From: Octopus bimaculoides
Taxonomy: Eukaryota
Direction: 5' to 3'
Length of the DNA: 64,000 nt
Assembly: GCF_001194135.2 (NCBI RefSeq)
Contig: NC_068981.1
Coordinates: 41,477,317-41,541,316 of the forward strand
Shown here: one piece after another, positions 2,401 through 55,763 of the stretch
How positions within the stretch are numbered: position 1 is the stretch's first letter
Layout of the letters: the number at the start of each line of letters is the position of its first letter
Program-made: the position numbers and the translations under genes
Notes under the pieces: generated by a model
Told to the model about the DNA's origin: nothing
Seen by the model: the letters and a program-made list of their open reading frames with translations, nothing else
Databases searched by the model: none

Positions 2401-3381
2401 TCACCCATACTTTCCTTTGATGTTTTCCCCCACTCTCCTTCATTCTCCTATGTATCCACCTATCAACCTGCATGTTATATGTTCCTGTTAGATCCCCTAC
2501 CACATCTAGTTCCCACCCTCCTTTCGAAATCTTGTGAACTCACTGACCTACCCATCCTCTCTGATCCCTGGTTCACTCCATTATATACAATACCCTGTAA
2601 CTTGGATGTACAGGCCCTCACCCATCTTCCTCTCTTCCCCATCTGAGGAAGCTGTATCTCTCTTCTACTGCAAGACACCTTTCTGTCCCTCCTCCCAATT
2701 GAGGGATCTTGTCTTGCAAGTTACTTGGTGACCCCACTGCTGCTAATGCCTCATAGAAAGCACCTAGTACTTCCACACAGTTTCAATCTACCAAATTTCA
2801 ATCACAAGACTATGGTAAAAAATACTTTTCCCCAGTGTACCACAGTGAGGTTAAACCTAAATTCACAATGTTGCAAAGTAGATTAATAACCATTAAACCA
2901 TGCGTGTGATGAATTGCAGATATATTTAACCCTCATAAGCATGGTAGAATAGAGATAAGGATGATGATGATGATGATGGTAAAAGATTATGTAAGAATGA
3001 ATTTTAGTGGTAACTAATTATAGCTCAGTGGATGTTAAGATCTTCGTATAGATTTAATATGTATACATTTAGATAAAGATAGGGATTTGATGAAGGTTTT
3101 ATGATGTGTCAAAGACAGATTCACTGGTGATACATGTACACACACATATATACATAAAATGAAAAAGAAAAAAATTAATAACTAAACATAAATGTCTCAA
3201 TGAAATGTTTGCACTTTACAGTGTATCTGACTCATATAGGATATTGTTTCTTTTTTTTATATTTTCAAATTTATTATTTTATGTAAGTTCTTTATTTTTG
3301 ACAATGTCATGTATTAGTACAAAGGTGTTATGTTGCCAAGTTATTTAGTATTTGAGACAATTTTTACCTTGAGTATGTCAG

Positions 3382-21143: not shown

Positions 21144-21179
21144 TCAAAAGATGGTAGCCTGAGAAGGTAAATTTATTAT
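21144..21179 (-). CDS. DNA2: DNA2 c31, terminal exon ([11 protein letters not shown])
   Basis: Resembles the vertebrate DNA2 C-terminal L|IIDLPS; stop TGA at 21146-21144. Confidence 0.85.
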   Translation of the reverse strand: MINLPSQATIF

Positions 21180-24100
21180 GTAATTCTGGTTAAAGAAAAT
21201 TCCTGAAAACAATTTTCTCATAAAATGTTCATATTTTTCTTTTTGTCAAAATAATATATTTTTAATGTTATTTTTCAAAATAATATAAATATTAAAAGCA
21301 GAAAAAAATAAATGGATTTCAAAATATATTTTGTTGAATCAATACCAAAAAGAAAGGAAGAAACTATTGATTTCAATTTCTTTTTAATGTTTGCAGTTAG
21401 CTTGATTTGTATCTGTGTTGGCTGCAGCAGCCTCTCCATGTAAATGTATTCTATTCAGATATGTATGCAGACATGTGTAGAGGTTTGTTTGTAATCTTAT
21501 TTACTGCTGATGGCTAAATATTTCTTGTTCCATTCTGTTCATTCAAACTCAAGAATATTCTATACAACTAAATTGAAAAACAACTGTGGCTGTATGTGTT
21601 ATTTTTAGACAGGGATGCTTTTTGTCTCCCACTCTTTCTCTCCCCTATTTTCTTTTTGTCATGTTTGAAGTACTGACTCTTTTTACTTTCAATCTCCATT
21701 ATTTAACTTNNNNNNNNNNATTCACCTTTATACCTCAGTCTTCCAATCTTCTCACTTCCCTTGAGTGACAAACATTTTTTTCTCTTTTCTTCACTCATAC
21801 AGTATGCAAGGCTTGAAATTCTCCCCCATTATCTCTGATTGGACAATCATATGCAGGAAAGATAATCAAAACTTACTAGTGACCCACAAATCTGAACAGG
21901 CTAAATAGCTACTACTTTCATAAGAGTAGTAGTTATTATGTTCAGCTTGGCAAACTAATATGATCTAACTACAGGCAAATAGTATGAAACTCTTGACATT
22001 CTCATTTATATAGATCAGCACTTTAACCAGAGGACTACTGTATCTATATATAGAATGGTTCATTTTAAAAACTACTTGCATGAAATTAGTTGACATTATA
22101 AATAGTGTTTGTTTCATGGCAGATGTATAGTTTTCATTTTTGTGCCCTATGTTTATACCTGAAGTATGAGCAAAATGAGTAACCTGTTTTATTTAAAAGC
22201 ACTAAACAATAGATAGTTCTGAATTTGAATGTCACAATTCTTTTCAACTTTGTTGGCATTAGATGAACTGATCTAAAAGATTCAGAAATATACAATGTTA
22301 TTCAATTAAAAGTTTTATTTTTTTTTTTCTATCTAGCATCATGGCCCACAACACAATATCCTATCCTCTCAGAAATTCTTTTCTTAGGCTAGCTAACCTG
22401 ATAAAGAATGTGTGTGTGGTGGGGTGCTTTTGCATTAATGTGTGCATATGTGTAACAAAAATATACAAAGGATATAAGTTGTCTTTGGATCAATAGCGTC
22501 ATTAAGTCTGCAAGTGGTTTGAATATTTCAAGGGTTTCAGCATTTCCAATGAAAATAAGCTTACATTTTGCTCGAGTCATTGCAACATTTAATCGTCGGA
22601 TATCTTTCAGGATTCCACCAGCCTAAAAACATAAAACAATCTCAAATTATAATTTAACATGTTAAATATAAACCATATAAGCATTAACTAATCACTCATC
22701 TTTCCATTATTTGTGCTACATGTACAGCAACAGATGGTACAAGACCTAACCATATTCAACGGTTCCTATCATCACCCTCTACACTCAACCTCTTCTGTCT
22801 GTCACAAGGTCAATGTATAAGGGTTTACATTGAATCTGTTCATATAGAATACATTCTATCACCCTTGCTATATTGCTAGTCATCAGCTATTGCTCACTGT
22901 CCCCTTGACTAAATATTACTGTCATTTATCTTTACCATTATCCAGCTCTATTATTACCCATTACTCCACTCTCACCTTAAACACAGTTTCTACTATCATA
23001 CTCTTATCTCTTGTTTATACCATCTCTCTCTCTCCCTTGTTCACACTGCCTTGAGTGGATATGTATGTCAGGATAGTGAGAATTCTACTCTTATGGTATA
23101 GAAGTTAAGCTTCTTGTGTGGTGCCATGGTAATGCACTCAATACACTTTGTAAAGTGATTAGTGATGGGAAGGGTATCCTGACATAGAAAGCAAACCAAA
23201 ATATAAAGGCAAGATGTGATACTCCAACCTGTCGGTGTGGGTATGGGAGTAATCTGGATAAGAACTGACAATCCACCCAAACAGTACTGAAAGCAGACAT
23301 AAAGTAATGATATGATATCAATGCAACTTCAAACATTTTTGACTCAAATTTTCATTTATCCACATACATCATGTTAGAGTAGTTTTGCTACATAAATATT
23401 TAAATTTATATCTTGTAATATGCTTGTCTAAATGCTTTATATTTAGCTTTCCGTCAATTTCTTTGAAAGTGTGAAAATGCTCTATGAATAAGTATGGGAA
23501 TAAAAATATATAAGAAAAAGTGTAAGGATATACTATAAGTGCAAGAAAATTTTCTATTTTAAATTTGTACAATTTCCAGTTGTGTGTGTCAAACACTAAA
23601 ATTACAGTAAATATTGCAGATTCTAAAAAACGCCAAGATTATTCAATATTAAGATAATTTTTCTTTAACATTATGGATTCTTACTTACATTGCAAGATTT
23701 TAAATTTTCTTTGGAACTGTTTCTCACAAATGTTACTATGATTATATCTTTATCACGGCCTTGATACTGATCAACTGTATTCACCTCTACATACTGAGCA
23801 GCTTCTTTTCCGATTACATTAATCAGTGTTTGCTGGACAAGTTTTACTTGATTTCTGTATGGAGCTATAACACCAATATCACTGAGGCACATGCCATCCT
23901 AAAAGTACACAAAAAATATTAACCAAACACACATATATATTACCTGAAGTGACATAATTGAAGAAACACAAAGAAAATTGATTACAGACAATCTAGTTTA
24001 ATTGTATCCATTTTTAAACATCAATTTTGATAAGTCTGCAGTATGGGATTTTACTCTTCTTGATCTAATGAGATCTTGTGAGATCTAATATCCTTAGATT

Positions 24101-26358
24101 TAATCTCTGCATTTTCTCAAGAATTTGATTATTTTTAATTACTATTGAATTCATTAACAAGTTGCATAAAGTTTATTATGAAAATAAGGAATTATGACCT
24201 TAGTTCTTTAGCTGCCTCACTAGAAAAAGGACATCACTGATACTCCATGCTGGCATAAATCTAAAACTAATTCTCTTCCTAATCAGTTGTATTATAACTT
24301 TTTTTAATACCCTTCATGACCTGATCCAGCAGTTTGATGTTTGTGTAGTACTCTTTCTTTCTAAAATATCACCTTTACTTTTAAAGTAGTTGATGATATT
24401 GCTACACCAGTCATTGGGTATTGCATTTTTCTATACAACCAAATGATGTTGAGAAAAAAGAAACAGAAAAGCAAAAGTGGATTTTTAAAATTTTCTATTT
24501 ACTTACCGTTTGGAAAGCTGAGACTATCATAGCAATCAACTGTGCCTCAATGTTATTTTGAACTTCTCCTCTCGTATTGTAAGTTTCTGGAGCTGGAACC
24601 TAGAATATTGGCAATGATTAGTGCAGAAAAATGTCACTACAATTGAACAAAAAAGATTTAAATTCTAGGATTTAGTCTTTTCTTTTTGAAACTATTTCAA
24701 CAAAACAAGTAGTAAAATGCTTTTGTTAAAATCAGATGTGAAGAAAATTCTAATGTATTAAGCAGAGCGACTGCAAAAATTCCAGCACAAAACATTACAA
24801 TTCTTAGCTTTTCATAGCACTTTAGCATTATCTGTTATTTAACTTCACTGAAATATTTAGTTTGTAAATGTTTACTAAGTAAAAGGAGTTCAGAAATTGA
24901 GTTGAAAACAGGTAAACGTATTCAACAGCTTATGAAGTTTCACATTCAATATTCTTAGTATTCAACTCAATTTATATGAACCTAGAGAGTAATCCTGTAC
25001 CAACCAAATTAGAAAAGGAAAAGTTAATTTAAATTCAGCAGCAAGAACAGTCAAAGTGATAACAAGAATTTTAGTTTTAAGAAATCAGTTTTATATATTG
25101 TGTTGTTGGCATTAAGAAAAGCATCCAACCTTAGAAAATATACCAAAGCTGACACTAAAGCTTGATGCAGCTCCATGCTTGCCAGATCCAGTCAAACTGT
25201 ACAATCCTTGCCAGCATGGAAAACAGATATTAAATGATGATCATTGTTCTCCATATTAATCACTTTTAAAACATTTTATCAGTTCCTTTTTAGAAACATG
25301 GCAATTGCTGACTTTCATTCCCCCACCCCAACTCTTCATTTAGGGAATTATCTGAAGCAGATGAAAACATTAATGGTAAACAACAGGTTGAGAGAAAAGT
25401 GTTTTGTAAGGAATGGATGAGGTGCTAAGCAATAGTCATGCCAATAATTCAAACACTACTTTAAAGATAAATGGCATTATTACTATTTAGAAAGGCAACT
25501 ATAAAAGAAAGCAAATTTCAACATCTACTTTTCGTTCTTGTATGGGTCAGAAAAATTTGTTGTGGCAGATTTTCTATGGCCAGATGCTTGTCCTGTTACC
25601 TATTTTCAAGCAAGGTAATATTTCTCATATGGCCAGACATGTTTTCCATGGATTATTGGAAATGAAAGATATCATACATGATGTCAGAACAAGGGTATAC
25701 ACAAGCATCTCTCTCTCTTGTGTGTGTTTATGTTTATATATATATATATATATAGGACAGGCTTTTTCAGTTTCCATCTACCAAATCCACTCAAAAGATT
25801 TTGGTCAGCATAGGGCTGTAGTAGAATACACTTGCCCTAGATATCAAACAGTGGGACTGAATCCAAGACCACATGTTTGAGGAAACAAGTGGCATATCAT
25901 ACATCAACACTTTCACCTGGTATCTGAAAAAAATAATGCTTTTCAGCTGAAAGCATTCAAGTTCCAGCCACAACTGCTGAAATATTAGTTTGTAAAAGGA
26001 AAAGAGTGCAAGAATAATAACTAACTATGCTCTGTAATATTCATATAAATAAACTATTAAAAGAAAATACCATTTTTGTATTGAGAAACAGAACTGCTTT
26101 ATTCAATGCTCCACTGACAACATCTAGCATCCAGGATGGGAGATTAGATTTCTGTAAAACAACAAAAATCACAAAAATAAAATATGAATTTTATAACATT
26201 CAGAAAGTCTGAACTAAGTATAGACTGATCACTTAATATATTTGGTAAAATAATATAACAAAATCATCATTCAATATAAAATAAACATTGAAAGTTGTGT
26301 AAGTAAAATACCTAAAAAAACTATTTCCATCAAGCTCTTCCTTACTACAGAAAATCTA

Positions 26359-26392
<34 letters not shown>

Positions 26393-29300
26393 GGACTTGG
26401 TAAATTTTTAAATTGAGTCCATCATTGCCGTTTAATATCTATTTTCCAATGAGCAACACTGAGCTCTGGTGTTGGACTTGGTATGGTTTCTATGGCTTGA
26501 TGCCCTTCCTAACACCAACTGCTTTACAGTATGCACTGGGTGCTTTTTTTCTCATGCCACCAGCACTAGTGAAGTTACCAAGTAATTCACATGAATTTCT
26601 AAGAGGTATCCTAACAGATTGTTTCAATTTTTTTTGTGTCAAACCACTCTCTAAAAGTATGCCAGTGGTGTTTACACTGATTTACATTCTATTGACTTTA
26701 ATGTACCTTGGGTACAGATATCTCACACCTTCCTACAGTATGGAAGTCCTCAAAGACTACATTTATGAAATCAATGCAGGTTTAGGATACATGTGAATAA
26801 TGCATGATTAGGAAGGAATGAAGTGTCACGTCATATCAACTATATCAATTTTGCTAACCCGGAAAGCTCTGCAAAAGCTGTAAAGCATCATTGCTTTTTC
26901 TCCTCAGACTAAAATGTGAAAAATATCTTAACTAAACAAGGAATGGAATATATTAGCAACTGCTGTTTGTAACCTGCTTCAGTTAAAATAACTCTACAAA
27001 GGATAAGATAATATTTACACAGAAAATGAAAAAGACACACCCTTTTAACACACTTAGAAGGTTGAATGGTTCGTGTTGCTACTTCTTCATTACCACACTG
27101 TAGACATCCTTCATAAATCAGCTCATTTGACAGTAACATTATCTCTCTGCAATGAAAAAAAAAGTAGTCTTTAAGTGTTCTTCCACAGCTTGCAATTTTT
27201 CTTGGAGGTGGGGAGTGGGGGAATGTGTTGAGTCAGTGTGCCAGTGGTATGAAAAAAGCACCCAGCACACATAGTAAAGCAGTTCACATTAGGAAGGGCA
27301 TCCAACTATAGAAACCATGCCAAAGATGACACTGGAGCTTGATGCAGCTCTGTACCTCACCAGTTCCCTGTCAAAGTATCCTACCCATGCAAGCAAGGAA
27401 AGTAGATGTTAAATGATGATACTGATGCAAGAATAGTAATAATCTTGACTTATTTGTATGGCCTTACAGACTGGTAGAGAAAGGGAGGAAGAAACCAGAA
27501 AACAAGCTTAATTTCAAACAACATAAACTTCAGCAAAAGCAGGCAAGACAAATGGTAGTATTAAATTGGGTTTAGCATTGACATTAAGTCTACCAACTAA
27601 AAGTAGTTGTAGTCTATTCAATAGGTTTCTGCACAGGTACAAGCTAACCAATTTCACTCACAAAACTTGCATTGTCCAAAAGTATCATCATCATCATCAT
27701 TTAACGTCTGTTGTTCATGCTGGCATGGGTTGGACGGTTTGACCAGGGCTGCTCCAGCCTGATTTGGCATGGTTTCTACGGCTGGATGCCTTTCCTAATG
27801 CCAACCACTCCAAGAATGTAATGGGTGCTTTTGCTTTTACGTACCACCAGTATCTACCACGACTACGATTTCACTTTGCTTCTTCTCAAACACAGCATAT
27901 TGTCAAAGTTGTCGGTCATTGCCTCCATGAGGCCCAGCGCACGAAAGGTACTTTCACATGCCACTGACATGGGTGCTAGTTACACGACACTGGCACTGGC
28001 CACATTGCCTCCATGGGAAGATATTTGTCTAAGATGACATACAAAGAGAACAAAGTTGGAACCATGTGATTGCAGAGTGTATGCCTTAAACACTAGGTTA
28101 TGCATACAATGGTAGTAAATACAGGGATAAAAGTTGAATTATGCTTTGGTACGTATATACAAATACAATATATATATAAGAGCATTACCTGTTCATTCTA
28201 TACTGAAGATTTAGCTGCACAGTTGCACCCTTATCTTCAAGCTCTACAAAAAGACTTTTGTCCATGCCTAAACTCCTGAAAAATGTAAAAATAGAATAAG
28301 TTTAAAGAATTATTAGCAAACGTTTTATAGAATTACCACCACAACCACCTTATACACCCTCATCAAAAGCACCACTATATTTTCTACATTGACGTGGTAT
28401 TAATATGAAGAATGAAATCGTTATGGATGAAAAAAACGAAAAAATTTTATGTGGAATTATTGGAGTAAGTTGAGGCATTGATTAAATCAACCTCAATATG
28501 CAGCAGGTACTTTGTATCATCCCTAGAAGGATGAAAGGCAAAGTTGGTCCAAGCAGGATTTAAACAGCTGCCAAATATTCAAACCATTTCACAAGCAATG
28601 TATCTATGCTGAACTACACATCATTCCCATACTACATTACAATATTTCAAGAGTGTCAATCCTCAGTATTTTATCTATAACTATTTATAGCAGCAACATT
28701 TCACTCACTACTGCCATCTTCATTCCTACAACACTAAATCCTCATTGTTAATGATAGGTTTTTATTCTTTACCAAGTTAGTATAGAATGGCAGAAACAAA
28801 TATGATGTTAAAATTTATGTAAGAGATGTATAGAACAATTACAGATTTAGATTTGTTTGAATTAGATTAAATACACCAAAGTCCACAACTCTGAGATTTA
28901 ATATGCACAAATAATGAAATCATGATTGGAACACTGCCTCTTCACTTCATCTGTTAAAGCTATTATGGTAGCAAGATTAAGAACAGGACATCAATAACCC
29001 ACAGAACATGGTTCTGGATTGTGGTAGCTAAACTATGAAAAGGCAGGAAAATATTCATTTTCTTTGTTAAGAAATCTAAAACATCTCTTCAAAAAAAAAA
29101 AAAAAAAAGAGAATTTTTTGTAGTATCCCAAAATTTGGCATGCTCCCCTACACAGACTCTCCACTTATTACACTCTCCTATCAACATTTCTAACATTATC
29201 AAAAGCAGCATCTGCTTACATAATACCACAGCCTCAAGCAAGGCCAATATAAAACATTTTTCAGCATTCAGTGTCATTTCAATAACACTCACAAGCACAC

Positions 29301-32300
29301 ACACAAAAACATGCTTTTTACCCGCCAAAATAACCAGCTGAATTACTTACTACACTTTATTGCAAATGAGTAGAAGTAGTTATAAATCAAAAAACATGTA
29401 TATATATATATATATAGATAGATAGATATAGATATTTTGTATAAATTTTGAAAAATTATCTATTTACTTGGCCTGATCGCTTTGGACAATAGGAGGAAGT
29501 TGTTTTGAATCTCCAACTAAAATGAATTTTTTGGCAGCAAATAAAGGGCCAAGGCACATGGGCAGCATCACTTGAGAGGATTCATCAATAATACAGACAT
29601 CAAACTGACGTTGACATTGAGAAAAGAGTGTATGGGACATGCCCACACATGTAGTTGCAACAACATTCTGGGGAAGAAAATAAAGGAAAACAGTTTACCA
29701 AAACATTGTACAAGAGCTCAGAAAATAAAATATTAAGCTTCAATTAAAAATATCAAGTTAAATTTCTGTTTTCATTCAGTAAAACGTTTTTCTAATCAAG
29801 TTAAAATCTAACAGACACTGTGTTATAAACTGATTTAAAATTTTAAACTCTCTCCAGAGAAAGTTTTTTGTCAACAAATTGTTTGGATAATCTCAAATGA
29901 CCAAAGTTTTTCGATGCCAAGGTATTTTCTCTTCAGCTATATTGATGATGTTCATAATTAGCGTCACTACATATATTCTATCTTTTATCTTTTATTTGTT
30001 TCAGTCATTGGACTGCAGCCAAACTGAGGCACCACCTTGAAGGGTTTAGTCAAATAAATTGACCCCAGTACATATTTTTTTTTTTTTTGTTAAAGTCTGG
30101 CACTTATTTTGTTGGTCTCTTGCCAAACTGTTAAGTTATGAGGACATAAACGATCTAACACTGGTTCTCAAGTGGTGGTGAGAGACAAACATACACTGCA
30201 ATGTATTTGGTCTGCTGCACTACCATTTATGCCATTCAGTCACTATCTTCAAAACCCCAAATACTGAGTATGTAATCAAATTCACTGTGCTCTCAGGAAA
30301 GTCACACACGAGCTAAGAGAAGAGAGCATTAATCTCTTGGCTGAAGAATTAGGAGTTATGATGAAATAAAACTGGTAATTCTGAGTATTTTCTCTTGATA
30401 AATACTTGGACAAATATCTATATTCTTACAATGGATTCATATACAGCTTTCAATTCCTGCACAGATTTCACATTCTTAGTCAGTTCATCTGTTGAATAAG
30501 GGTAGATATCAGGGTGGATACGATCCTTCCGGCCCATACGTAAAAACTGGATTTTTTCCTAAAAAGGACAAAAATGTAATTCAAAGATTAGAACATGTAT
30601 ATTGAAAAAAAAAAAAAAGTATATTAGAAACTGGTTATAGGAATTAACAGAGAAATAGAAGTTTGTCAACATTTAGATAACATTTCTGTTCATTTGTGTA
30701 ACATCCATTTTCCATGTTGGCATTGGTTAGAAGTGCTTTTCCCATTGACAACCTTTTTGTTTTTTTCCAAGTACTGGGATTTATATTCCACTGGTCTTCA
30801 AAACTGCAGAGTGATTGGTCATAATCTCAATAAAGTATGTAAACATCATTTACTATTTCACTTGAACAAAACCATGAATTGTCAGCATTCAGTCACTTCA
30901 CATATACGACAGGCTTCCAACAGTTTCCATCTCTCAAATTTACTCATCAGGTGTCAAGTCAAGGCTATAGCAGAAGACACTTGCCCTAGGTATAGCACAA
31001 TGGGATTTTGGTGAGTTAGTAGATGTGGGTCCCATTAGTTGTGTCATGGACATGACTACCTCTGTAGTGCTGGTGCCATGAAAAGAATACACTTAGTACA
31101 CTCTATAAAGTGTTAAGTAAAGAGGAACTGTTAAGCTTGTCGAGGACATGACACCTCCAAGGATGGCACCATGAAAAAAAGCATAAAGTGGTTGGCATTA
31201 GAAAGGACATCCAGCCATCAAAGCCAAACCAAAAATGAAACTCATAAGCAAGATGAACAGTACCAGTGAAAACATAAAAAGTGGATGCAAAAGTGATAAC
31301 AATACAGACACACACCATACATGTACAATTTATATTCATTCAGAGTCAAGTGCTGATTCACTCTACATTTACTCAGTGCAGTTACTGCTTGATTGAATTC
31401 ACATGGTGCAATCCTCAACTGATGTGTGAATTTGTAATTGGAGTACAAATAGTGTGTCAAATCAATAAACATTAACTGCAATATCTGACATGAGATTTCT
31501 AAACAGATGCTGTTTTGTCTTTACAGTGAAATACTGTGGTGGTAACATATTACAACTCCAAAAGGAATGTTAATCAAATAATCCAGTAATCACAGATTAA
31601 TTAGTTGAAGTAAATAGGTAGCATTACGATATTTCATCTACTTGGTTGCTTGGCTTCAAACCTTCACTCTCTTCCACATATACAGTAAGTAATTTAGCCA
31701 AAATTTCATATCTCAAGCACAGCATATCGCCAAAGATCAAAAAATAATATCTGAAAAATTGCAAATTTCCATTAAAAAGAAAAAAAAAACATACTTTTCT
31801 CAGTTTAAGAAGTATATTGTCAACAGCAGAGTGGGTAAAACTGGCCACTAATATTGAAATACCACTAGCAACTAGCATCTGAATGAGGGCAACTATAGTG
31901 GAAGTTTTCCCTGAAATTGAAAAAGAAAGCAAGTGTTAGAGTTTAATCTGAAGAAGTATCCAAACAAAGGTGGGATTACAGACACAGAAACATTGAAGAT
32001 CTGTCTACCTACCTGTCCCTGGATAACCACAGATAACGACATAGTCTTCACTCATGAAAACCTAGAAATAGGATAAATTTCCATTAGAGCAGATGATTCA
32101 TCAGTGATGAAGCTGATATTTAGCTAAGCTAGAATAACAGTGACAAGCTTTAAAATGTTAAAACTATTAGTTCAAAGAGTAGTCTATATGAATCCTACCA
32201 CAAGAATTAAGTTGTACTTTAGATCTAGGTCAGCCCTGATAAAGCAGGCCTATGATCCAACCTTGATCATTTCAAGTTATTTTCAATCAATTTTACCTAT

Positions 32301-35300
32301 GATCTCATACATAAGCTTGTGGATTTCATTTCCAATGTGACGAACAAGATGTACTCTTAGTCAAGGCACTTCAATTCATGCTGTTCCAGTCAAGCCAGCT
32401 AGTAAACTAAGTATTAAGACTGACAGAGCACCAGGTCATCATCAAGTAGTGAAGCACTACATCTTTACTCTTTTGTTTTTTATCTATCGCAAGGTCACAT
32501 TATTCAATATATTTTTTATCCCTTTTGAAATAAAATTCAGATGCAATTCGAGGGACATTTAGCTAGGTCAAGAAACAGACTACAGGCTTCTTTGTTGGCT
32601 TGTAATGCATTCACAAGTACTGTGTTATGTTATTCAACAAGAAACACGATCCTACTTTGACAGGGATCAAAAAGAATTGCTATTTCACAAAAATGATACA
32701 GCTGATCAAAATGTGTCTGAATAAAACACAAGGTAATATTCTTGTGCAAAGCTTGCTGCTGTTCTATAAACTGAAGTATCTAGAATTGTTTTGTCTAGTG
32801 GAATACAAATTTTTAAGTCAAAAGTCAATAGCCTTATAATAATTTGCCACTCAAAAAACAGGAAGCACTTTTTCTTCATTGATATATCAGCATTAAAATT
32901 AATTAGGTTGCAAAATCTTTACACAAATAATCTATTAAAATACTTAGATTTGCAGAGACATTCCAATATAGCGGAACTTAGTGTGACAATAGTTTATTTT
33001 CAACAAATCTATTCAATCAATGCTATTATGGAAAAATGGTAATTCAATCAATAATTGTTTCAAATTTTTACACAAGGCCAACAATCTTAGGGGGAGGGGG
33101 ATAGTTGATAACATCAACTCCAGTATTTGACCCTGAAATGATGAGATTTGAACTAAGAGTGTAAATAATGTTAGTGGTGCTGATGATTGTACTGGTGGCA
33201 TAATGATTACAATGTGAGCAACACTGGAAGTGATTCAGAAAACAAGCAATGAAAAGGAAGATAAAATCATAGATTCACCTTTAAAAGTGCCACTTTTTGA
33301 AGTTTGTTTAAAGGCTTGAAAATAGATTTAACTAAAATAAAAAAAAAGGGAGAAATAAAAATTTAAGTTAATAAAACAGTTGGAGAAAGAAATAAAAAAA
33401 ACACTCAAGGATTTATAATTATGCTCCAATTCTAAGTTTTCTCTCAACTGAGTAGGCATATTTCAAAAAGTTAGCATTGAAGGAAACTAAAGCTAGTCAA
33501 ATAATACCTTATGAATAAACCAAGTTTAAAACCTTTAGAAGCTCAGAATACCCAAACTATTATTCTTATACTTAACAACAACAAACTAGTTTCTTTTTGG
33601 TGCACACTCATTATATATCCTTTTCAAATGTACCTAAGCTACAGAAAATGCAGGTAAACATCATTTATAAGTAACAAATAAAACCTGACAGGTGCAGAAT
33701 ATGATTTCTTTTCCTTTTAGAATCATGCATATCTTCAATCCTTGACAATTGTTACCTGCATTTATCAGATTTCAAGCTAACAAGGGAGCATGTATATAGT
33801 TGCTTGATTTGCTAGAAATATCTGCCAAATTTTACTTGGCCATTTAATAAAAAAAGACACTCCTAGATATGATATGCTTAGAAAAAAAGACAAGACGGTC
33901 CAAGCTGGAAGGCTTTTGATCATAGGTTACTTGAGTAAAGTTTACTTCAGGTAAACTGACAGTAACTAACAGATCTTTTTTCCCCCCACTTTTTCCTAAA
34001 TTTTCCATGTATCCTCTTGTATCTCCCCTCACTGCTACTTGATTTATTTCTGTAGTACACCTAATTATGATTATTATACTCATTATGATAATTACATCTT
34101 TTCTGACTTGACTAATATCTAATAAATACAACAAAACATTGCACATCAGTTATAACAGATTAAAATGTTTTACTAATGAAACAAGATTAAGTTATAAGAC
34201 CAAATGACAAGTAGTAAATAACGTTTCCTCAATTCAAACTAGTAAGAATGTGGCATAGCAGCAAAACATCCCACTGAAGATTAACTGCCAGTTAATCTTA
34301 ATCCACATGTAAAATATACTCAACAACCAACTGTAATGATAAGCAAGATTTCAGTCAACATACTCAGGCACTGCCATTGAGAAATGTAGAGATCTAAACC
34401 CCACTTGGCATCTGACTTCAACAAGGTATTTGACAGCATACACAAACCTTCATTTAGTAATGTAGCATTCTTAAAGTTGTTATCATGGAAATCAAACATG
34501 CCAACAGAAAATATTGTGTCAAGACTGAAAACAAGTACTAGCAGCTGATTCAAAATGCTGACAGAAGTACACTGAGAATGCTTTCTATCACTTGTATTTG
34601 CCCTGGCCTATGATTGGGTGCTGAAGAAAGCTACCCAAAGAAAGGACATACAAATTGCTATCCTAGAAAAAATACGAAATAAAAAATAAAAAGGTAAAAT
34701 AAGCCTAAATAAGCTTCAATTTATTAAAAAAAAAAAAAAAAAATGAACAGGTGCTCTTCATTCTTAGTCAAGTTTTAGAAAGTGGTGATTTAAAATCTTA
34801 CCTTTCTGAACAGTGCTTTTTCCTAATGTTGAATGCACTCTAGGTTTTTCATGGTCAATTATCAATTGTCTTAATCTTTCACTGAAAATAAGACATGTTA
34901 CTGATTAAATTATTTACTCAAGAATTACATTTTACACAATACTATGAAAAATATATAAAGTCTATATATATTATGAAAATAGATGTTGTGTATAGACATG
35001 TAAGTGCTCAGCAACAGAAAAACAGTAAAAAAAAGGAGAGTAATGGCAGAACATATACTGCAGAAAGAGAGACTGCTGAGAAAGATATACAAATTGTATT
35101 ATGTAAACTACAGACAAGAGAAGAATTTTGATATTTTGGCATCTTTGTTACTGTTTTAATGCTATATTATACTTGTAATTTCATTTGATGTTAGGTGTTA
35201 CAGTAAACAAACCTGACTTCAGTATTCTACAAAATATCAATGTTAACAGTAACGAACAAATATATTAACAATGCCAACAATAGCTAATGCAGTTTTACAT

Positions 35301-36261
35301 TATATGAAACATCAATATAAAACTACCTTTTGTGACCTCTATCAGTGGATAAGAAAACTTTAATAACAAAACTTTTTTACCTGTGAGCAGTATTTGCCAT
35401 TAAAGTTATCAGATTATTATAGCATGTGCCCCAATTCTCCCAGTCAGAACATTTGTCGACTTTGAAAATTTCTGTATTAACATTGAGGTGGTCATCAAAG
35501 CTCCTGGAATGAAAATGAATGAAATTATGTCATTATGTAAATGAAAAGGATTCTGAAACTTTTAGTTAGTTATTCTTTGTTCTGTTCTTTTGTGGTCTGG
35601 GTCAATCAGATCATATATGTCACAGTTCCTTGGGAAGACTAGGCCACCTATAGACATGACGCTAACATTATAATTATAAATGTAACTGGTTCTTTCATAT
35701 CTAAACTGAAGATTAATAGCTACTATCTACTCAACAGAATAACTTTGATAGTGGGTGTATCTTATCTTGGAGCACAATTGAATAACTTTGGCAGTAGTCA
35801 AACGAATTTTAGTTTTGCTTTAACCCATTCATGAGAAAAAAACACCCGAATTGCATGGATGTACCTCTTTACATTTAAACCAAAATATTGAAATAATTTG
35901 TCATACATTAGTGGTAACACGATTTCACTAGATAAAGATTTCCTTTACACAGTATGACATTTCTATAACTTAATGTTGTGGTCACTGAAACTTTTTGCTT
36001 TTTTTTCCAAATCATTTTTTATTTCTGTAATGGCCTATCATCATCTCAACTTAACATTGACTTTTCCATATTCACATATGTTGGATGGAATTTTACTGAG
36101 GCAGATTTTCTATGGCCAGATGCCCTTCCTATCACCAACCCTCACCTGTTTCCTGACAAGGTAAGATTTTACCTATGATTAGTACTCAAAGAAGATTGGA
36201 ATTGAAAGACACTGCTTACAAAACAGTGACAAGGCAAGGAGACAGTAACACACACACACAC

Positions 36262-36349
<88 letters not shown>

Positions 36350-39300
36350 CACATACACACACACATCAGACTACTTCCAGTTTCTCCTCAACCAAATTTA
36401 CTCAAGACTTTGGTCAGCCTGAGGATTATAGAACAGGATACATGCCCAAGGTACCACACAGTGGGACTGAACTCAATACCATGTGGTTGGGAAGCAAACT
36501 TCTTACCACAGAGCCACAATTGTGGTATGGTTTCTATGGCTGGATGCCCTTCCTTAAACCAACCACTTTACAGAGTGCGCTGGGTGCTTTTTACGTGCCA
36601 GCAGCACGGGTCCGTTAACATAGCACTGGCACAAGTGCATTTTATGTGACACCAGTGGATGACAACACTTTTACTGAAGGGTACATTCTGCTATGAGTGG
36701 ATGAATCTTCTGTAGCATTACATATCACCAGTCAATACATTCCTTTGACATCTTAATGACATGTAACATCCTCGGGTCAGCCATCACCACTTCATCTCAA
36801 ATTTTCCTTGGTCTCCCTTTTTCACAAGTTCCACTAACTTGGAATGCCTGGCACTTTTGTATACAGCCATCATCTTCCATATGCTTCACATACCTGTACT
36901 GGCACAGCCTCCTCTCTTGCATACTACATTTGATTCTTCTTATACCCAGTTTTTTTTCCTTAGTTCATTTGTACTCTGGCATACATGCACACTAACATTA
37001 AATATATATAGAGCATGCTAGTTTTATTTCTTTCTAGTCTTTGTAAATCTTCTTCATTTAAAGCCCATGTTTCAATATTATGCAGCATTGCAGTTCTAGC
37101 ACAAGCATCGTACAATTATGCAGAATGTGCTCATGAACAACACTACATTTATTTAATGATTTTCTCATCACTATTTTGGTAAGTCTATGCTTTGCTGCAG
37201 AGATCTAATAAGATCAAAATAGACTAAAGTTGTTTTCACATCTAGATTGTATAACTAAAAATAATATTAGCCATTGACTAATATTATCTTTCTCTCATCA
37301 AATATCATCATTTTAACATCTACTTTTCCATGGGTCAGATGGAATTTGTTGAAACAGATTTTAACAGCCAGATGCCCTCACAGCATAATTACTTCAAATT
37401 GTTTTTTCTATGTTCTTTGCATAAAATATGGTAGCACTGACTTACAATACATTAGATTGTTTGCTATGATAAATAATAGAGTAAAGAATGAAGTAGTAAA
37501 ATTTTAAAGATAGCCATGACACCGACAGAAAACATAAACCAAAATGTCATCATACCTGTCACACATAACAACAAGATGATCCTCAGAAATACTGTAAATG
37601 TATCCTCTACAAATAACAATCTGTTGTTTGTCTTCAACACTAATTGCAACACTGTCATGAACATTCAATCCAACTGTATTAATGGGTTCAAAAGACTGAT
37701 GTAAGCTGGAAAACAAAAACAAAATATCCATCATAATCATTTCCTTGATAGCAACAGCAATTACACAAATTAGCTAACAATATTTTTTCTAACTTGATTC
37801 TTAGATGCTGTCATCATCATCATCGTTTAACATCTGCTTTCCATGCTAGCATGGGTTGGACGATTTGACAGAGGACTGGCGAACCAGATGGCTCCAATCT
37901 GATCTGGCAGAGATTCTACAGCAGGATGCCCTTCCTAATGCCAACCACTCCGAGAGTGTAGTGGGTGCTTTTTTGTGCCACCGGCACGAGGGCCAGTCAG
38001 GCAGTACTGGCAATGGCCACACTCAAATGGTGTTTTTTTACGTGCCAGCTGCACAGGAGCCAGTCCAGCGGCACTGGCAATGACCTCGCTTGAATGTTTT
38101 TTCACGTGCCACCAGCACAAGTGTCAGTAAGGTGACGCTGGTAACGATCACGCTCAAATGGTGTTTTTTATTGTATTTAATTCTATTTCAATCCAGATCA
38201 GTGATTTTCAAATGGTGCACAGCAAAGGAGTACCTAAGTGAACTGGCTGTTTTAAACTATAATATAAGGCTTAAGAAAATCCAAACTAATGCTTGAGCAT
38301 CTTGTTGAGTAATGAAGACAAACCAATATTACAAACTGGAACCAAAGGAGCTAATTATGAAACCTGTAATAAAACAACAATCTTACTTGGAATATGGGTG
38401 TCTTTTAAACGAGTTGAGAAATTTTTCTGTGTCAGGGAGTGTTTGAGAGCCACAAAACTGGAGGTTGCTAATACATTCCCCTTTTTTTTCTCTGAAATAC
38501 ATAAAGAAATAACATTACATAACCAACTTAAAAGAGAAATAAGATAAATATAATTATTTAACTCTTTCAGCACCAATTACTTGAAATCACTTCTGGCTAT
38601 TATATAAAACTTATGTTCATATTTAAGCTAAAACCCCATCATAATTTTATGTAAGGCCAATTATTTTGTTAATAATAATAATAATAAATAATAATAATAA
38701 TAATAATAATAATATGCTCAGGTGCACTACAACTGATCAGACAAGAGGCAGTACATAGAAAAATGCACAGAAAGTGAACAGTGAATGAGTCATTAATAAA
38801 AAAGGTGAGGTGGGGAGATCAGGTGTACTGATAGCAAATTTCAGGAAGCATGAAAGATTTGAAGAATGTAGTGTCCCAACAACTAAAAACTGATAAGAGT
38901 AGTTTATCCCATGCTTCAGCAATTCTGAGTGTGAAAAAATGTTTTTGAAAGTCATGGGTGTTGTGCTGTATTTTGATTTTGTAAGAATGTCCACAAGTGT
39001 TAGACATATGGAATTCAAAAGGGTGCCCAAGGTTGTTATTGGAAAGATGGTGGGTAATCTTGTGTCAACAAAGTCAGTTGCTAGATGTCAGAGCTGAATG
39101 TGAGCATGCCCAGGGAAGTAAGACATTCAGAGTATGGCAGATATTCATCTGGTTGCATATTTCTGAACAGTTTCCAGGAAATTGATATGCCGAGTAAGAT
39201 ATGGGGCTCCAGACTGGTGATATGTTTCAAATCAACTTAAGTACAGGAAGATGTCACACAGAATGATTGGCATAACAGTGTCCTCATCAACTACTACAAG

Positions 39301-42300
39301 AGTGAAGAGAGAAATCTACAATGGTATCAAACTGATGGACTAGGTTGTGAAAGTTACTGGAAGAGTCAAAGCTTAACTGATTAGGAAGAGAATTAGCCAA
39401 GATGACATGCAATTTAGAGATACCATGATGAAATGTACTCAGTGCATTCTGCTGCTACAGTTACAATGACAACACAAGCCCTGAATTAAACATTGAAAAA
39501 TAACTGGTCTTATACCTAGGTAAAAAATATAAATAATTGTAACAAACCTGTCAATGCCAGTTGAGCACCATATATCACGGATCCCTTCGCCATGGATACT
39601 GCTTTGTTTTTCAAATTCAATCATGATACACCAGCGAATGAAAAAAATAATATGTGACTGGCTTAAATGAGATAAAGATATTTGGTGAAGTTCTTTACGG
39701 TTTTTAGTCATGTTCTCAACATCTGAAGAAAAACTGGAAAGATACAAACAGTACAATAAAATTCAGAATACTCAGTGGTATAAAAAATTTACAAATTATG
39801 CATTTAAAAAGCAAAATATGCAAACAAGATGCTCTTGAGCTGGCCTTTCTCCTCAACAAACTTTTCAAACTTTCTCTCCTTATAAGTACAAAGGAATACA
39901 ACAAATGGCAAAACATGTGAGACAAGTGTTGGAAAAGACCTATTCAACATATTTAAGCATGGAAAAGTGAATGTAAAAATGACAAATTCAATTAAAAATT
40001 AACTTACTTTTGATAAATAGAGCAGCTTAGAAGATGGGGACATTTACTACAAGCAGACACATTGTTGATGGGCTCAGGTAATTTACCAAGAAGTTTTGAT
40101 AAATCCTCTGGAAGTGAATTTTCTCTAAGTAAACTGTTTTGTATATAATACAAAATCTCATTTCTGAGCTGGATTAATCCTGTTAATGAAAAAACAAAAA
40201 AACAAAATGCAACCAGTGAAATTTTTCAAGTGTAAATATATAAAAACATTGGTGTTTGTAAATTTTTTTTTTCTGTTTGTAATCAATTTGATCCTATTTT
40301 TAAAAACGATTCCATATTCCTGTATATGAACTATCATCATTTAACATCCATGTTCCTTGCTGGTATGGACTGGATGGTTTTACAATGGCTTGACTGTCTA
40401 CTATAACATGGTTTCTACAACTAAATGTCTTTCCTAATACCAACCGCTTTACAGCATGTACTGGATGCTCTTTTGGTGCTACCAACACTAATGAGGTCAC
40501 CATGCAACTTGCAAGACAACAAGACTTTATGCTACAACACGAGGGAATTAAAGTATGACAGAATAGAACAGGTTTTTTGTTGTAGAGGGGATACATGGCT
40601 AGCCATATTAAAGGGTGTAAGGTGATGAGGTGTTTATGTGAACTCTCAAAAGTAAGAGGAGAGTAAAAATGAATGGAGGCAAAAGAACTGGAAGTGTGGG
40701 TGAGTGAAGGTAACTAGGACATATAGGAGAGTGAGAGATAGGGAATGGACAAAGAGGTGAATATAATGAATGAGCAAGTGTTGAATGATAAGTAGGAGAG
40801 GTAGGGAAGAATAGGTGAAAACTGTAGAGACTGGATAGGGTTGAGGAGTGGATATAGTGAATGGTGAATAAAGGGTAGGAGTGACTAATGATGCATGAAA
40901 GTAATTCAGTAGTCTGTTGAAGAGAGAGAGAGAGAGGGGTGACAGGAGGTTGGGCAGTTGTGAGTGGAGGGAGAAGAGAAGTAGGTGTAGTGCATGGGGA
41001 GAGTGAGTCTCTATAGTAGTGAAGGTAAGATGATATGGCGGCTTGGGGTGCATGACAATATTAAAGATGAAAGATGGATACCAAGTGAAATGGTTGAAGG
41101 TAGTAAGAAAGATTAGCCAATATCAAGGAAAAGTTGCATTTAGGGAGATGAAGGGCAATGGGGGTGACTTGGTGGAAGGAATTGGACAAGGGGCCCAGTT
41201 GTGTGAGTGTGTATACACACAAACACACACACACATGCACAGTGTTTCCAGAACTTAGTTCCACTGAGTTGGGTAGGTCTTCTAGAGAATTGCATATCAC
41301 TAATCACCTTGGTCTTTTGTTATCTCCTCTGAGAAGTTCAAGATCCTAAAAGTATTGATTATATTGTTGTGCTACTTTGATATTTGAAAACACATAACCA
41401 GAACAACTTAGCCATGCTTTCAGCTTGTTCAACTTAGCCCTTCATGACAATGTCCCAACATGGTTGCAATTCATATCCACTTTCTGACAGATGGTCAAGC
41501 TTGTGCAGTGGAGACCTCAATTTTTCTTGGCCACCACACTACAGTCCCTGCTCACTAAGATAACTTCCCACAAGTGCAAGCCCCATGAGTCAGAATGGTT
41601 GTTCCAGCACATCTCTCTCACCATCCTCTGGAGTAATGCCTTTTCCATTTTGTCTGCTGGGACCACGAGGCAGACCGACAAATCTTTTTAGTTATAGCTG
41701 TTGTAAAGGGTAATTGTGGTAAGTGGAAATCAACTTCAGCTTTGCTGTTATTTGTGCATTTCAAATTCCTTCACCTCTCAAAAACATACCCCTTCTTTCT
41801 AATTCCTAACTAATATAACTGAAACAAGTAAAAGAATAAAAATAAACTGAATGAAACTTAATTTTTTAGATTGAATCATAAAAACATAATCTACCATACT
41901 CAAGAACTAAGTCTTGGGATTATCAACCAAAATCTATATAGTTATTTCAAATGTTATGTTATAGTTCTATATTTTAGATTGGTCAGCAAAGTAAAATTAA
42001 TCTTTAGATCTGTAATGAATAATAATGAATACATTTGGTTAATTACTGTTATACCTCTTTTATTTTGATGTTCAGCTGAAACAGGACTCATGTTTGGTTG
42101 ATCTTTCAAGTAAAGAAGTAAACCCTCTTTTGGATCTTCTCGGCGATCAGACATCATCATAGTGTACAAAGTAACCTGGAATAGAGACAAAAAATTAAAC
42201 AATGGAAGGTAGAGAAAATACCTTTATTGAAAATCAGTAATTCATTTAATTGCTACTTAATACATTTTTCTACTTGTTTCTAGACTTAAAATTTCCTTCA

Positions 42301-45300
42301 GCTTGTGTAACCTAATACATTAAGGTATTTTCTCATCAAAATATGTGCTGAGAACTTAGTCTATTCAAGACAAACAAGTAAAAGAAAAACATAAGATTAA
42401 AAAAATAAAAGAAATGCAAATAATTCAACAACTTTTGCAATGTAAAATACAATACAAATACAACAAACAAGAATATTTGTCTAAGAGACAATGAAAGAAA
42501 TCATAAGAAACTATACCTATATCTTTTCTCAGGTGCTTAGAGCACAGTTTTGCAATTAATTTAATTAGTTACCAGCATACGTACTGTTATACAAATTAGA
42601 ATCTCCAGTTTGCTGATATGATAATATTTGATGAACTTATTATTGAGACTATAGTAGAAGACATTTGCTCAAAATGCCACTCAGTGGAAGTGAACCTGAA
42701 ACCACATGGATATGAAGCAAGTTTGTTAAACAAACAGTCATGCATGGCTACAGTGCTACAAAGATTAAATATATTACCTGGCCTTTATGTTCAGCAGAAA
42801 AAGAAGGATTTCCAGTCTTCAATTCAAGGGGCACTACTTTCCTTTTTAAATTGTGTGTCTGTTGTTAGATAATAATATATAATTTAAATATTAGTTGCAG
42901 AAAGAGTATCTGAATTTTCAGTATTATCCTGACACTCCACCAGAATAAAGATTATATAAAGACAGAAAGAAAATATACTTTTAAAGTTGAGTACAAGATA
43001 AGAGAGACAGCAAGAAAATAGACCAACAATTTGGAATGAATAGCAATCGCAACAAAGTCATGCCGATGCTGGACTTTGCTGGTTCTAGTAACATCCAGTA
43101 GTTTCTAGTTCTGAGCTTTGAACAAACTTATGAATGCTTCAGAATATGTTTCGGAATATTTCTAATATGTATGAGTACAGTAATATTGGTCTCAAATTTT
43201 GGCACAAGGCCAGCAAGCTCAAGAGAAGAGGTAAGCCAATTACATCAATGCCCCCGAAAGATGAAAGGCAAAGTTGACCTCGGTGGAATTTGAACTGAGG
43301 AAGTAAAGACAGATGAAATGGCGCTAAGCATTTTGCTTACATTACAAAGTGTTTCAATATGGGGATGGAAACCAATTAATTGCCATGAACCAGCTCATTT
43401 TTTAACATTTACATCATAAATATATAGTGAAAGCAGGAAATGTTTCAACAAGTTGAGTTATGCTGACCATATAGCTAAGTGTTCAAGTTTTCTTTACTTA
43501 TAGCCTTTGTTCCAGCGCCAGGTTAGTCTGAAAACACAGAAATCAATGTGATCACAGGTGTTCCAGCTGTAACAATATACTTTTCATGCACAGTGATCCC
43601 AGATATATTATATCTAGAATTACACTGTCCACTGCATCTTTTAATACGGCATGGTGATTTAGCTGCTATTGTTTTCAAGGCACATAACTCTATTAGAGTT
43701 CAATTATTCTGCCAACAGGTTTATGCAATTAACACTAATGTCATCTGTAAATATAAAAAAAAACTGACACAAGAAAACAAAACCCACCTTTGCTTGCTTG
43801 AAAATGCATGCATTTAAGACTTGACTTAGATCTGTCATGAACCTTAGAACTCATAAGGCTAGAGCCTAACACAGTTTCTCTAGCATATAAGTGTCAGATT
43901 ATAATACACCCCTTAAACAAGATGCTGGTTCATCACAGGGTTAACTGCCCAGCTAATTCTGGAACTCATTTACAGCCGAGTGGACTGGAGCAATCTGAAA
44001 TAAATTGTTTTGCTCAAGAGTACAATGCAATGCCCAATCTGGGAATCAACAATTTTACAATTGTGAATGCAACAGTCTAATCACTAGGTCACACACCTTC
44101 AAAAAATGCAAGCCAAAAAGAAAAAAATAAGAGGTATGTGTTTAAATAATATAAAAAAATTTATATTACATATGTATATGTTTATCTATGTAGTATAGAA
44201 AGGTTAATAAATATTTAACAAAACACCTATAACTATTTTAACTTACTTTGATTTCCACAGTGAGATCAATTTTTCCTTTCAAACCAAACCTACAGAGAAA
44301 AAAATTGTAAAGTTCAGAAATAATCTTTTACAGGTTTTGGTCATAAGATTGTGGCCATGCTGGAGCACTGCTACTGTTAGTTTAAGTTAATTATATTGAC
44401 CTCAGTACTTTGTCGGTTAATTATTTTATCATCCTAGGAGGACAAAAGACAGAGTCAACTGGACATAAAGAGACATAACTAAAATGGATTGGAACCATCA
44501 TTTTAACATCCACTATTCCATACTTGCACAGATCAGGTATTTATTGAGGCAGTCTTTCAACATCCAGATGCCCTTCCAGTCACCAACCCATAGCTATTTC
44601 CAAACTAGGTAATATTTCCCCATGGCCAGACATGTTTCTGCAGAATATTGAGCGTGGCCGTTGCCAGTACCGCCTGACTGGCTCCCGTAGGATTTTCGAG
44701 CGAGATCGTTGCCAGTGCCCCTGGACTGGCTTGTGCGGGTGGCACATAAAAGACACCATTTCGAGCGTGGCCGTTTTCGTGCGGGTGACACGTAAAAGCA
44801 CCCACTACACTCTCTGAGTGGTTGGTGTTAGGAAGGGCATCCAGCTGTAGAAACTGCCAAATCAGACTGGAGCCTGGTGTTGCCATCCGGTTTCACCAGT
44901 CCTCAGTCAAATCGTCCAACCCATGCTAGCATGGAAAGCAGACGTTAAACGATGATGATGATGATGATGATGAATGACACTGCTTGTATGTCAGTGACAC
45001 TCATTTACAATTAACATGCAATATCAAGATACACACACACACACAGAATGGGCTTCTTTCAGTTTCTATCTATCAAATCCACTCACAGGATCTGGGTAGA
45101 CCAGGTCTGTAGTGGAAGACATTTGCTCAAGATGCCATGCTGTGGAACTGAAACCATTTGGCTGGGAAGCAAATTTCTTAATCATACAGCAATGTCTGCA
45201 CCTATAATATTGTAAGATATTGTCATTTGGCTCACCAATTTTGTGATTCTATTCTGATACACATTATATAAACTCATCATCAGTGTCCTTTCTGCTGTTT

Positions 45301-48300: not shown

Positions 48301-49299
48301 ACTTCAATTTAAACTGAATATACAATTCTTACCTCTGTTGCTTCATAAAATCTGTATGATGCTCAATCCATTTCACAATATTTGGAATATATTTTAAAAC
48401 TGCTGCCAGCACCACAGATTCATCAGTACCAAGACCATAACTAGAAAAAAACAAAAGAAGCAACAATCATTTACAGAAACAAGGTTGAGTTCTATAATAA
48501 AATGTGGTTGTTCTTCAATACTGCTTCTATTTTCTCTTGCTTGCACATTTTTTTAAACCCTTTAGCATTTAAACCACCTATATCTGGCCCAGATATTCTA
48601 CCATGGACAACGGACATTAAATGATGATAATGAACTTTACTCCACAACTCTGTTCATAATATTCATATATATATTTCAAGTATATTCATAATACTTATAT
48701 ATATTTCAAGCATTACGTTTATCTACTACTTGAAGCCAAGCATTTTAGAATGAGCCTAATTTAGATCTAACTTATATAATTTATAGTCTGAACTGCTAAT
48801 TGCAATTAAACCTTTAAAATTATTAAACAGAATTTTGATAATTTCCAACAAAGCATAAGGCCACACACTGAGGTGGAAGAGCACAGCCTCTTATAACTAC
48901 ACCAATATTGCACCAGTTCTTATTTTACTGACCCACTAGTAGATGAGAGGACAAGTTGGCTTAGGTGGGATTGAAAATCAAAAGGCAAAGAGGTGTAACT
49001 AAACACTACATGGCATTTTGTCTGCTACTCTGCTAACCAGTCTTTAAAAAGGATTGGTTAATACTCATCTCAGAAAGGTTAAAAAGATAAACACAAACAT
49101 ATGGTTATAGTTCAGTATATAACTGGCCTAAGTTCAATCATTTATATACTCAATAAAGTCTATGAGTTTAAACACGCTCATATGTCTTCGAAAGAAGAAA
49201 ATCTAGATTTTTTCTTAAGCATATCAACTTATCCAAACTCATGAACTCTACTGTACAATACAAAAGAACCACCACAGGTTTCCCTGAACCCAGTTTTTT

Positions 49300-49343
<44 letters not shown>

Positions 49344-55300: not shown

Positions 55301-55714
55301 TTACTGTCTCCTTGCCTTGACTTCATGTGATAGTTGTAAAATGAGTATCACCATCAGGCAAGTAGTAACCTTCATTTCTAATCTTCTGTGAAAACATCTG
55401 CTCGTGATAAAATATTAGCTTACTTGGAAACATGTGGGAGTTGGTAACAGGAGGGGCATGCAGCTTTATAAAATCCTCCTCAACAAATTCTATCTGACCA
55501 ACTCAAGCATGGAAAGGCAGACATTAAAACAATGATTATATATATATATATATATATATATNNNNNNNNNNGTGGCTGTGTGGTAAGTAGCTTGCTTACC
55601 AACCACATGCTTCTGGGTTCAGTCCCACTGCGTGACACCTTGGGCAAGTGTCTTCTACTATAGCCACGGACCGACCAAAGCCTTGAGTGGATATGGTAGA
55701 CAGAAACTGAAAGA

Positions 55715-55763
<49 letters not shown>

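Follow-up and report, generated by a model that had tools for sequence, protein, structure and literature searches.

The last intron of the DNA2 gene of Octopus bimaculoides appears to be a U12-type intron with AT-AC termini, spliced at 22476^21179 (here and below, a caret marks a splice junction), and we place the probability of this reading at roughly 0.92. The gene lies on the minus strand of a 64,000-nt stretch of contig NC_068981.1 (RefSeq assembly GCF_001194135.2, positions 41,477,317 to 41,541,316), hereafter the window, whose numbering is used throughout. The exons and splice signals at the 3' end of the gene are arranged as follows.

22622..22476, minus strand: penultimate coding exon, 49 aa, from helicase motif VI onward, ending LIQRQL (last codons CAA CTT)
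Directly ahead of that exon, minus strand: U2-type acceptor, tttatgtttttag^gc
22475..21180, minus strand: terminal intron, predicted U12-type AT-AC, phase 0, nominally 1296 nt including 10 N
22475-22467, minus strand: predicted U12 5' splice site ATATCCTTT, preceded by exonic ctt, so that -1 is T
21197-21189, minus strand: predicted branch-point sequence TTCTTTAAC, one C-to-T change from TTCCTTAAC
21188-21180, minus strand: CAGAATTAC, following the branch motif and ending AATTAC^, then ATA
21181-21180, minus strand: 3' splice site dinucleotide AC, which reproduces the RefSeq protein
21179..21144, minus strand: terminal coding exon, 11 aa plus TGA (21146-21144), with the 3' UTR after it

The consensus for U12 introns of the AT-AC subtype is ATATCCTT at the 5' splice site, TCCTTAAC at the branch site and AC at the 3' end (PMC2831892). 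In the octopus gene, ATATCCTTT is a perfect match to the first of these at +1 to +8, and it starts exactly where homology to DNA2 ends. The candidate branch adenosines (21191/21190) lie 10-11 nt from the last intron base because the spacing between the branch motif and the junction is 9 nt, and U12 branch sites are usually located about 10-15 nt from the 3' splice site. AT-AC is the only canonical pair of termini that reproduces the RefSeq protein at the last junction, and it is only with this junction that the spliced tail [IVLM]xxLP, in this case IINLPS, begins 41 residues past the sequence RRLNVA. The terminal exon then reads ATA ATA AAT TTA CCT TCT CAG GCT ACC ATC TTT TGA.

The other 30 introns of the gene are all GT-AG; their donors resemble GTAAGT and their acceptors are rich in pyrimidines. 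These 30 introns were used to train a position weight matrix (PWM) for U2-type sites, on which the real sites, each scored leave-self-out, reached 3.5-12.2 for donors (median 7.7) and a median of 10.8 for acceptors. The ends of the terminal intron scored -8.1 as a donor and -6.3 as an acceptor, and there is no strong polypyrimidine tract. In its consensus 5' site, its branch site near the 3' end, its terminal AC and its occurrence as a lone case among U2-type introns, the terminal intron closely resembles canonical U12 AT-AC introns, the Hall & Padgett / Tarn & Steitz class (summarised in PMC2831892). It differs from them in its single branch-site mismatch and in being phase 0, a phase reported as under-represented among U12 introns in the intronIC/IAOD collection, which covers 24 genomes and no mollusc (PMC7367187).

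Taken individually, none of these motifs is rare. At 33% G+C, four copies of ATATCCTTT were observed in the window versus 1.3 expected, the shorter RTATCCTT was observed 8 times versus 5.7 expected, and branch-site-like 9-mers with at most one mismatch were observed 28 times versus 23.6 expected. The splice motifs are therefore not significantly enriched and the argument rests upon their placement and their conservation. With regard to placement, six-frame translation of the window yields 146 [IVLM]xxLP peptides, and just one of the 146, that at 21179, has AC or AG immediately ahead of it as well as a branch-site-like motif at a distance of 6-14 nt upstream. The other minus-strand copies of ATATCCTT (23531-23524 and 49494-49487) lie within GT-AG introns, away from exon borders, and are regarded as chance occurrences. 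Minor splicing of the AT...AG type to the CAG at 21186 was likewise considered and rejected, as that site is just 3 nt past the branch motif. Elsewhere in the window, a branch-site-like 9-mer, TTCATTAAC (40182-40190, minus strand), is found 1 nt ahead of the CAG acceptor of intron 42054..40180; this too is taken as chance, since the intron in question opens with GTATAACAG and its remaining features are those of a U2 intron.

The gene carrying the terminal intron is identified as DNA2 by homology. Its coding sequence (CDS) occupies 63345..21144 on the minus strand, in 32 coding exons and 31 introns, and the exons of XP_052822289.1 (1739 aa; P0272 in our protein set) match the window exon by exon at 100% identity. 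The same range, 63345..21144, is the CDS range of our locus L007, and this part of the window is identical in sequence to CM046601.1 41496460-41542661 of GCA_001194135.2, reversed. XP_052822289.1 falls into one cluster with XP_014783794.1 (1695 aa), and both are O. bimaculoides DNA2. The 60-aa spliced peptide has mouse DNA2 (PDB 5ean) as its best PDB match, and the alignment is gapless across the junction (E = 2.2e-10), with octopus QRQL^IINLPSQ facing mouse AEQL^ILDLPSR; the 22622..22476 exon corresponds to mouse DNA2 residues 996-1044. As a query in a protein search, the 60-aa peptide gave no word matches and a nuclease-domain composite gave three fragments only, and a 684-aa composite of exons was required to recover DNA2 homologs. 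This composite found DNA2 proteins, the top match being O. bimaculoides A0A0L8G6D6, the exons of which match the window at 100% identity. The homologs carry PF08696, PF21123, PF13086 and PF13087, and the window exons are spread along the whole of DNA2, with both the nuclease and the SF1B helicase of an ortholog represented. A human DNA2 sequence served as a tblastn probe for exons only and was superseded by mapping of the RefSeq octopus protein. SLC25A16 is the neighbour of DNA2 in vertebrate models, and no mitochondrial-carrier match was found within the window.

A preliminary description of this DNA had named the gene as DNA2 and had proposed an AT-AC terminal intron, followed by an 11-aa terminal exon encoding a vertebrate-like tail. 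Each of these points is borne out: the mouse alignment and the placement of RefSeq octopus DNA2 on 32 window exons agree on the gene, all of the motifs lie on the minus strand where they had been placed, 21179..21144 reads as 11 codons plus TGA, and the tail IINLPSQ lines up with mouse ILDLPSR.

Conservation of the terminal intron

To place the octopus intron among its counterparts, genomic loci from mouse, kea, the frogs Nanorana and Spea and the pearl oyster Pinctada were compared for the position and phase of the intron at the DNA2 C-terminus. The 5' and 3' ends of these introns and their lengths are listed below.

Mouse Dna2 (locus L003, GCA_000002165.1): tta^ATATCCTTG to TTCCTTAATTCATCTTAC^, 1260 nt
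Kea DNA2: atg^ATATCCTTT to TTCCTTAACTTCCTAC^, 613 nt
Nanorana (frog) DNA2: tta^ATATCCTTT to TTCCTTAACACTAGAAC^, 885 nt
Spea (frog) DNA2: ctc^ATATCCTTT to TTCCTTGACACTTGAAC^, 397 nt
Pinctada (pearl oyster) DNA2: gca^GTATCCTTT to TTCCTTAACCAAATTTCAT^, 2424 nt

An intron is present at the same codon boundary and in phase 0 in every one of the species compared (5/5). It has the AT-AC form in mouse, kea and the two frogs, and a GT variant is found at the same boundary in the bivalve Pinctada. TATCCTT is invariant in the five-species alignment of 5' ends (alignment A1) and TTC-TTAA (TTCYTTAAY) is invariant in that of 3' ends, while the remaining intron sequence is unalignable. The octopus branch site aligns with the TTCCTTAAC/T of mouse, kea, frog and oyster, and the spacing from the branch motif to the 3' end is 7-10 nt among the orthologs. 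Since the same boundary, phase and U12 signals recur in mollusc and vertebrate DNA2, the intron would be no younger than the ancestor shared by molluscs and vertebrates, with AT-AC as its prevalent form.

The closest parallel is the last intron of mouse Dna2, which shares with octopus the AT-AC termini, the phase, the boundary, the combination TTCCTTAAT-TCATCTTAC^ and a 9-nt spacer, and which is also of similar length (1260 nt versus about 1296 nt in octopus). Mouse differs in having G at +9, where octopus has T, and in having the consensus base where the octopus branch site has T. The terminal intron of Pinctada imbricata (locus L001) likewise has the same position and phase, a perfect TTCCTTAAC and the tail IYNLPE; it differs from the octopus intron in its opening GTATCCTTT and, provided that the tail has been aligned correctly, in a TTTCAT^ end, which would make it a GT...AT intron. 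In this Pinctada intron (L001 51431-53854) no AG is found within reach, and the annotated protein reads through it as VSFYKVVVLE. A further DNA2 homolog was encountered in a metagenome (ERZ25072999, a 1.5-Mb contig; locus L002 6001-9033); it is intronless, 1010 aa long, approximately 50% identical to the oyster protein, and ends ...KVQNVLCPAEIPVK.

Human DNA2 has been included among minor-intron genes, and the +6delC variant in its 5' splice site leads to the use of cryptic 5' and 3' sites (PMC7507305). The full designation of this variant is c.3114+6delC, and it has been reported as a cause of Seckel syndrome (PMC6773220). By codon arithmetic, the variant would fall at the octopus-equivalent L^I-I-D-L-P-S boundary, in phase 0. 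Position 3114 closes codon 1038 (3114/3), leaving 22 residues of the human protein, whose full length we take to be 1060 aa, and 22 residues is also the tail length in the orangutan (Pongo) protein P0121. The human terminal minor intron, associated with Seckel syndrome/microcephalic primordial dwarfism, is therefore alike in gene and in intron class, with +6 being the second C of ATATCC; it is followed by a tail of 22 aa versus 11 aa in octopus, and the genomic comparison was made on mouse rather than human. The preliminary description had mentioned a human DNA2 minor intron with a disease variant at +6, and this is matched by c.3114+6delC, with the junction placed by the arithmetic above. We consider the octopus intron to be orthologous, as judged by boundary, phase and motifs, to the vertebrate DNA2 terminal minor intron that bears this variant.

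In mouse, splicing around the Dna2 minor intron is altered after U11 ablation (PMC12956336). In Arabidopsis, DROL1 is specifically required for AT-AC splicing; a DROL1 homolog has been reported in O. bimaculoides, and the distribution of the DROL1 subfamily tracks that of U12 spliceosomes (bioRxiv 10.1101/2020.10.19.345900). Our literature search returned no paper linking minor introns with cephalopods.

Possible competing splice sites

Several observations weigh against assigning the terminal intron to the AT-AC class. The branch site departs from the consensus TCCTTAAC by one C-to-T mismatch, the RefSeq DNA2 models are predictions, an unsized assembly gap lies between the two splice sites, and an Rfam scan, which covered the window only, detected no snRNA and no intronic RNA. 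Moreover, GT donors at 22466 or 22397 joined to an acceptor at 21186 would leave the tail in frame. This last point concerns the possibility that the major (U2) spliceosome removes the intron through cryptic GT-AG sites, for which the candidates are as follows.

22466-22465, minus strand: nearest GT donor, ttt^GTATAT, phase 0, U2 PWM 0.0
22397-22396, minus strand: cryptic U2 donor, cag^GTTAGC, phase 0, PWM 6.4, three codons ahead of the read-through stop
21186 (last intron base), minus strand: cryptic acceptor AACCAG^, in frame with the tail, adds NY, PWM 2.8
21159 (last intron base), minus strand: cryptic acceptor CCTTCTCAG^, gives ...ATIF*, PWM 6.5

Splicing from donors 22466/22397 to acceptors 21186/21159 would yield either a longer in-frame insertion or a product ending ...ISFATIF*. 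The scores of donor 22397 (6.4) and acceptor 21159 (6.5) lend this scenario some credit, as does the use of cryptic sites in human +6delC patients (PMC7507305). However, the nearest donor and the acceptor at 21186 fall far below the medians of the real sites (0.0 and 2.8 versus 7.7 and 10.8), and the predicted insertion between L and I-x-x-L-P is found in no ortholog: among 119 homologs containing motif VI, 84 have [IVLM]xxLP exactly 41 residues past RRLNVA. Cryptic U2 splicing would also leave the invariance of TATCCTT and TTCYTTAAY across phyla without a reason, and the RefSeq models take the AT-AC junction. We therefore regard it as very improbable as the normal route, with U12-type AT-AC splicing being strongly preferred, although the cryptic sites could be of relevance for minor isoforms or, as happens in the human patients, for isoforms induced by mutation.

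Database annotation and the assembly gap

The junction is already annotated by NCBI RefSeq in O. bimaculoides and is not new: the C-termini of XP_014783794.1 and XP_052822289.1 are identical to the AT-AC spliced tail, and the RefSeq CDS ends at window position 21144. For the octopus genome itself, this makes the junction a correct yet routine annotation point, because current RefSeq models use it. Earlier octopus models are a different matter. A0A0L8G6D6, a 735-aa model of 2015, starts mid-gene, ends in a spurious last exon (24430-24317, minus strand) and is without the last three true exons, so that motifs V-VI and the tail are absent. The 2015 gene models cut DNA2 in two, and a 740-aa UniRef entry consists of the large 5' exon continued into the adjoining intron.

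Among the 119 homologs, about a quarter (29/119) have 'ISF', the translation of ATATCCTTT, after the boundary; one (1/119), from Pinctada, has 'VSF', the translation of GTATCCTTT, and five (5/119) exhibit other anomalies, or mis-splices, at this point. The entries with ISF and other mis-splices fall among P0017-P0119, P0129, P0143, P0149, P0198 and P0234. At the DNA level, the read-through was confirmed for Spea bombifrons (L006 17273-17669): its annotated end is ISFLK*, and the real tail, IFNLPPKAHEHFPG*, is encoded 397 nt further on, where it sits behind a U12 branch site and AC. From this case it follows that 'ISF' represents an unspliced AT-AC 5' site. The signature can be found in a cuttlefish, the sea urchin Diadema, the acorn worm Ptychodera, hagfish, chimaera, teleosts, birds, reptiles and mammals; correctly spliced tails are present in abalone, limpet, dog whelk, scallop, amphioxus and lamprey, and a chytrid fungus has a comparable one. 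It had been anticipated that predictors confined to GT-AG introns would mis-annotate this C-terminus, and the 29/119 ISF entries, the single VSF entry and the truncated A0A0L8G6D6 bear this out. As a practical check, 'ISF' at 41 residues past RRLNVA marks an artefact of the unspliced DNA2 terminal intron.

These annotations bear upon the proposal that there is no functional intron at all, in which case the octopus mRNA would end by read-through and the match of IINLPS to other tails would be coincidental. The frame does stay open for 28 codons, and many database proteins in other species are so annotated. The ISF annotations are nevertheless artefacts, as the Spea locus illustrates, the 28-aa peptide is without homology, and the tail matched by the downstream exon is conserved in proteins ranging from fungal to mammalian ones, the exon itself lying behind a branch site plus AC arrangement that is unique in the window. 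We consider the chance that read-through is the true state of the gene to be slight in the extreme.

The gap mentioned above is as follows.

21710-21719, no strand: assembly gap of 10 N inside the terminal intron

It is situated 756 nt past the 5' splice site and 530 nt ahead of the 3' splice site, such that 1286 bases of the nominal 1296-nt intron were actually read. The gap is harmless to the reading frame, which depends on the two splice sites (phase 0), and the read-through stop is reached before it. The gap persists in the chromosome-level assembly GCA_001194135.2 (L007 43627-43636), and its flanks show no shared 12-mers and no overlap. An unsized gap of this kind, retained at the chromosome level between flanks without overlap, does raise the possibility of a misjoin, with the terminal exon located farther away or on another scaffold and the 1.3-kb intron an artefact. 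Arguing otherwise, strand, order and distance are as in the orthologs (introns of 397-2424 nt), the exon stands behind the right 3' signals, and the RefSeq CDS end is placed there. A misjoin thus seems most improbable, and it would alter only the length of the intron rather than its nature as a U12-type AT-AC intron. Two more gaps are found in DNA2 introns (49344-49369 and 55562-55571), both flanked by TA/CA microsatellites.

Proposed splicing and other features of the locus

Based upon the established minor-spliceosome pathway, several steps can be proposed for the octopus intron. Firstly, U11 snRNA and later U6atac would pair with the 5' splice site ATATCCTTT. Secondly, U12 snRNA would pair with TTCTTTAAC at the branch site, a G-U wobble being still compatible with the C-to-T change, and the presumed branch adenosine would lie 10-11 nt from the AC 3' end. 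Lastly, excision would join LIQRQL to the 11-aa tail in phase 0 and thereby restore the conserved I-x-x-L-P C-terminus. Dependence of the excision upon U11/U12 is presumed by analogy with this pathway.

Retention of the intron would have a different outcome.

22391-22389, minus strand: stop codon used if the intron is retained, giving a 28-aa alternative tail

The preliminary description had placed this stop at about 22389, which holds, and had given the resulting tail as about 29 aa, which is corrected here to a computed 28 aa. As this is the last intron of the gene, retention puts no stop upstream of an exon junction, and a transcript that keeps the intron and is exported would consequently give rise to a protein with an unrelated 28-aa tail. 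The gating or rate-limiting role put forward in the preliminary description would be hypothetical. It is conceivable, albeit doubtful, that the conserved AT-AC subtype, phase 0 and 7-10 nt spacing reflect slow removal of the last intron that limits the output of tailed DNA2. If true, retention of the minor intron would be a means of adjusting DNA2 output in octopus as in vertebrates, and the lineage of the pearl oyster, with its GT...AT intron, would be in the midst of a change of intron subtype. In a wider context, the octopus gene adds a mollusc data point suggesting great age for the DNA2 minor intron that is mutated in human Seckel syndrome, with its AT-AC form preserved. This is consistent with a conserved reason for minor-spliceosome control of the DNA2 C-terminus, and is no proof of one.

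Several other features of the octopus DNA2 locus were also observed. A single 2.1-kb coding exon (57303-59432, minus strand) encodes a Ser/Asn/Lys-rich N-terminal extension of approximately 710 residues (XP_052822289.1 residues 21-730), in which no Pfam match was found; many invertebrate DNA2 representatives are 1200-1800 aa long, versus about 1060 aa in vertebrates. Two of the DNA2 introns are very short (57212-57303, 92 nt, and 31911-32012, 102 nt, both minus strand) compared with a median of about 1.07 kb. Lastly, interspersed repeat copies with similar translations are found on the minus strand at 57025-56795, 44892-44608, 27305-27174 and 9396-9250, mostly inside DNA2 introns, and probably represent a common octopus transposable element.

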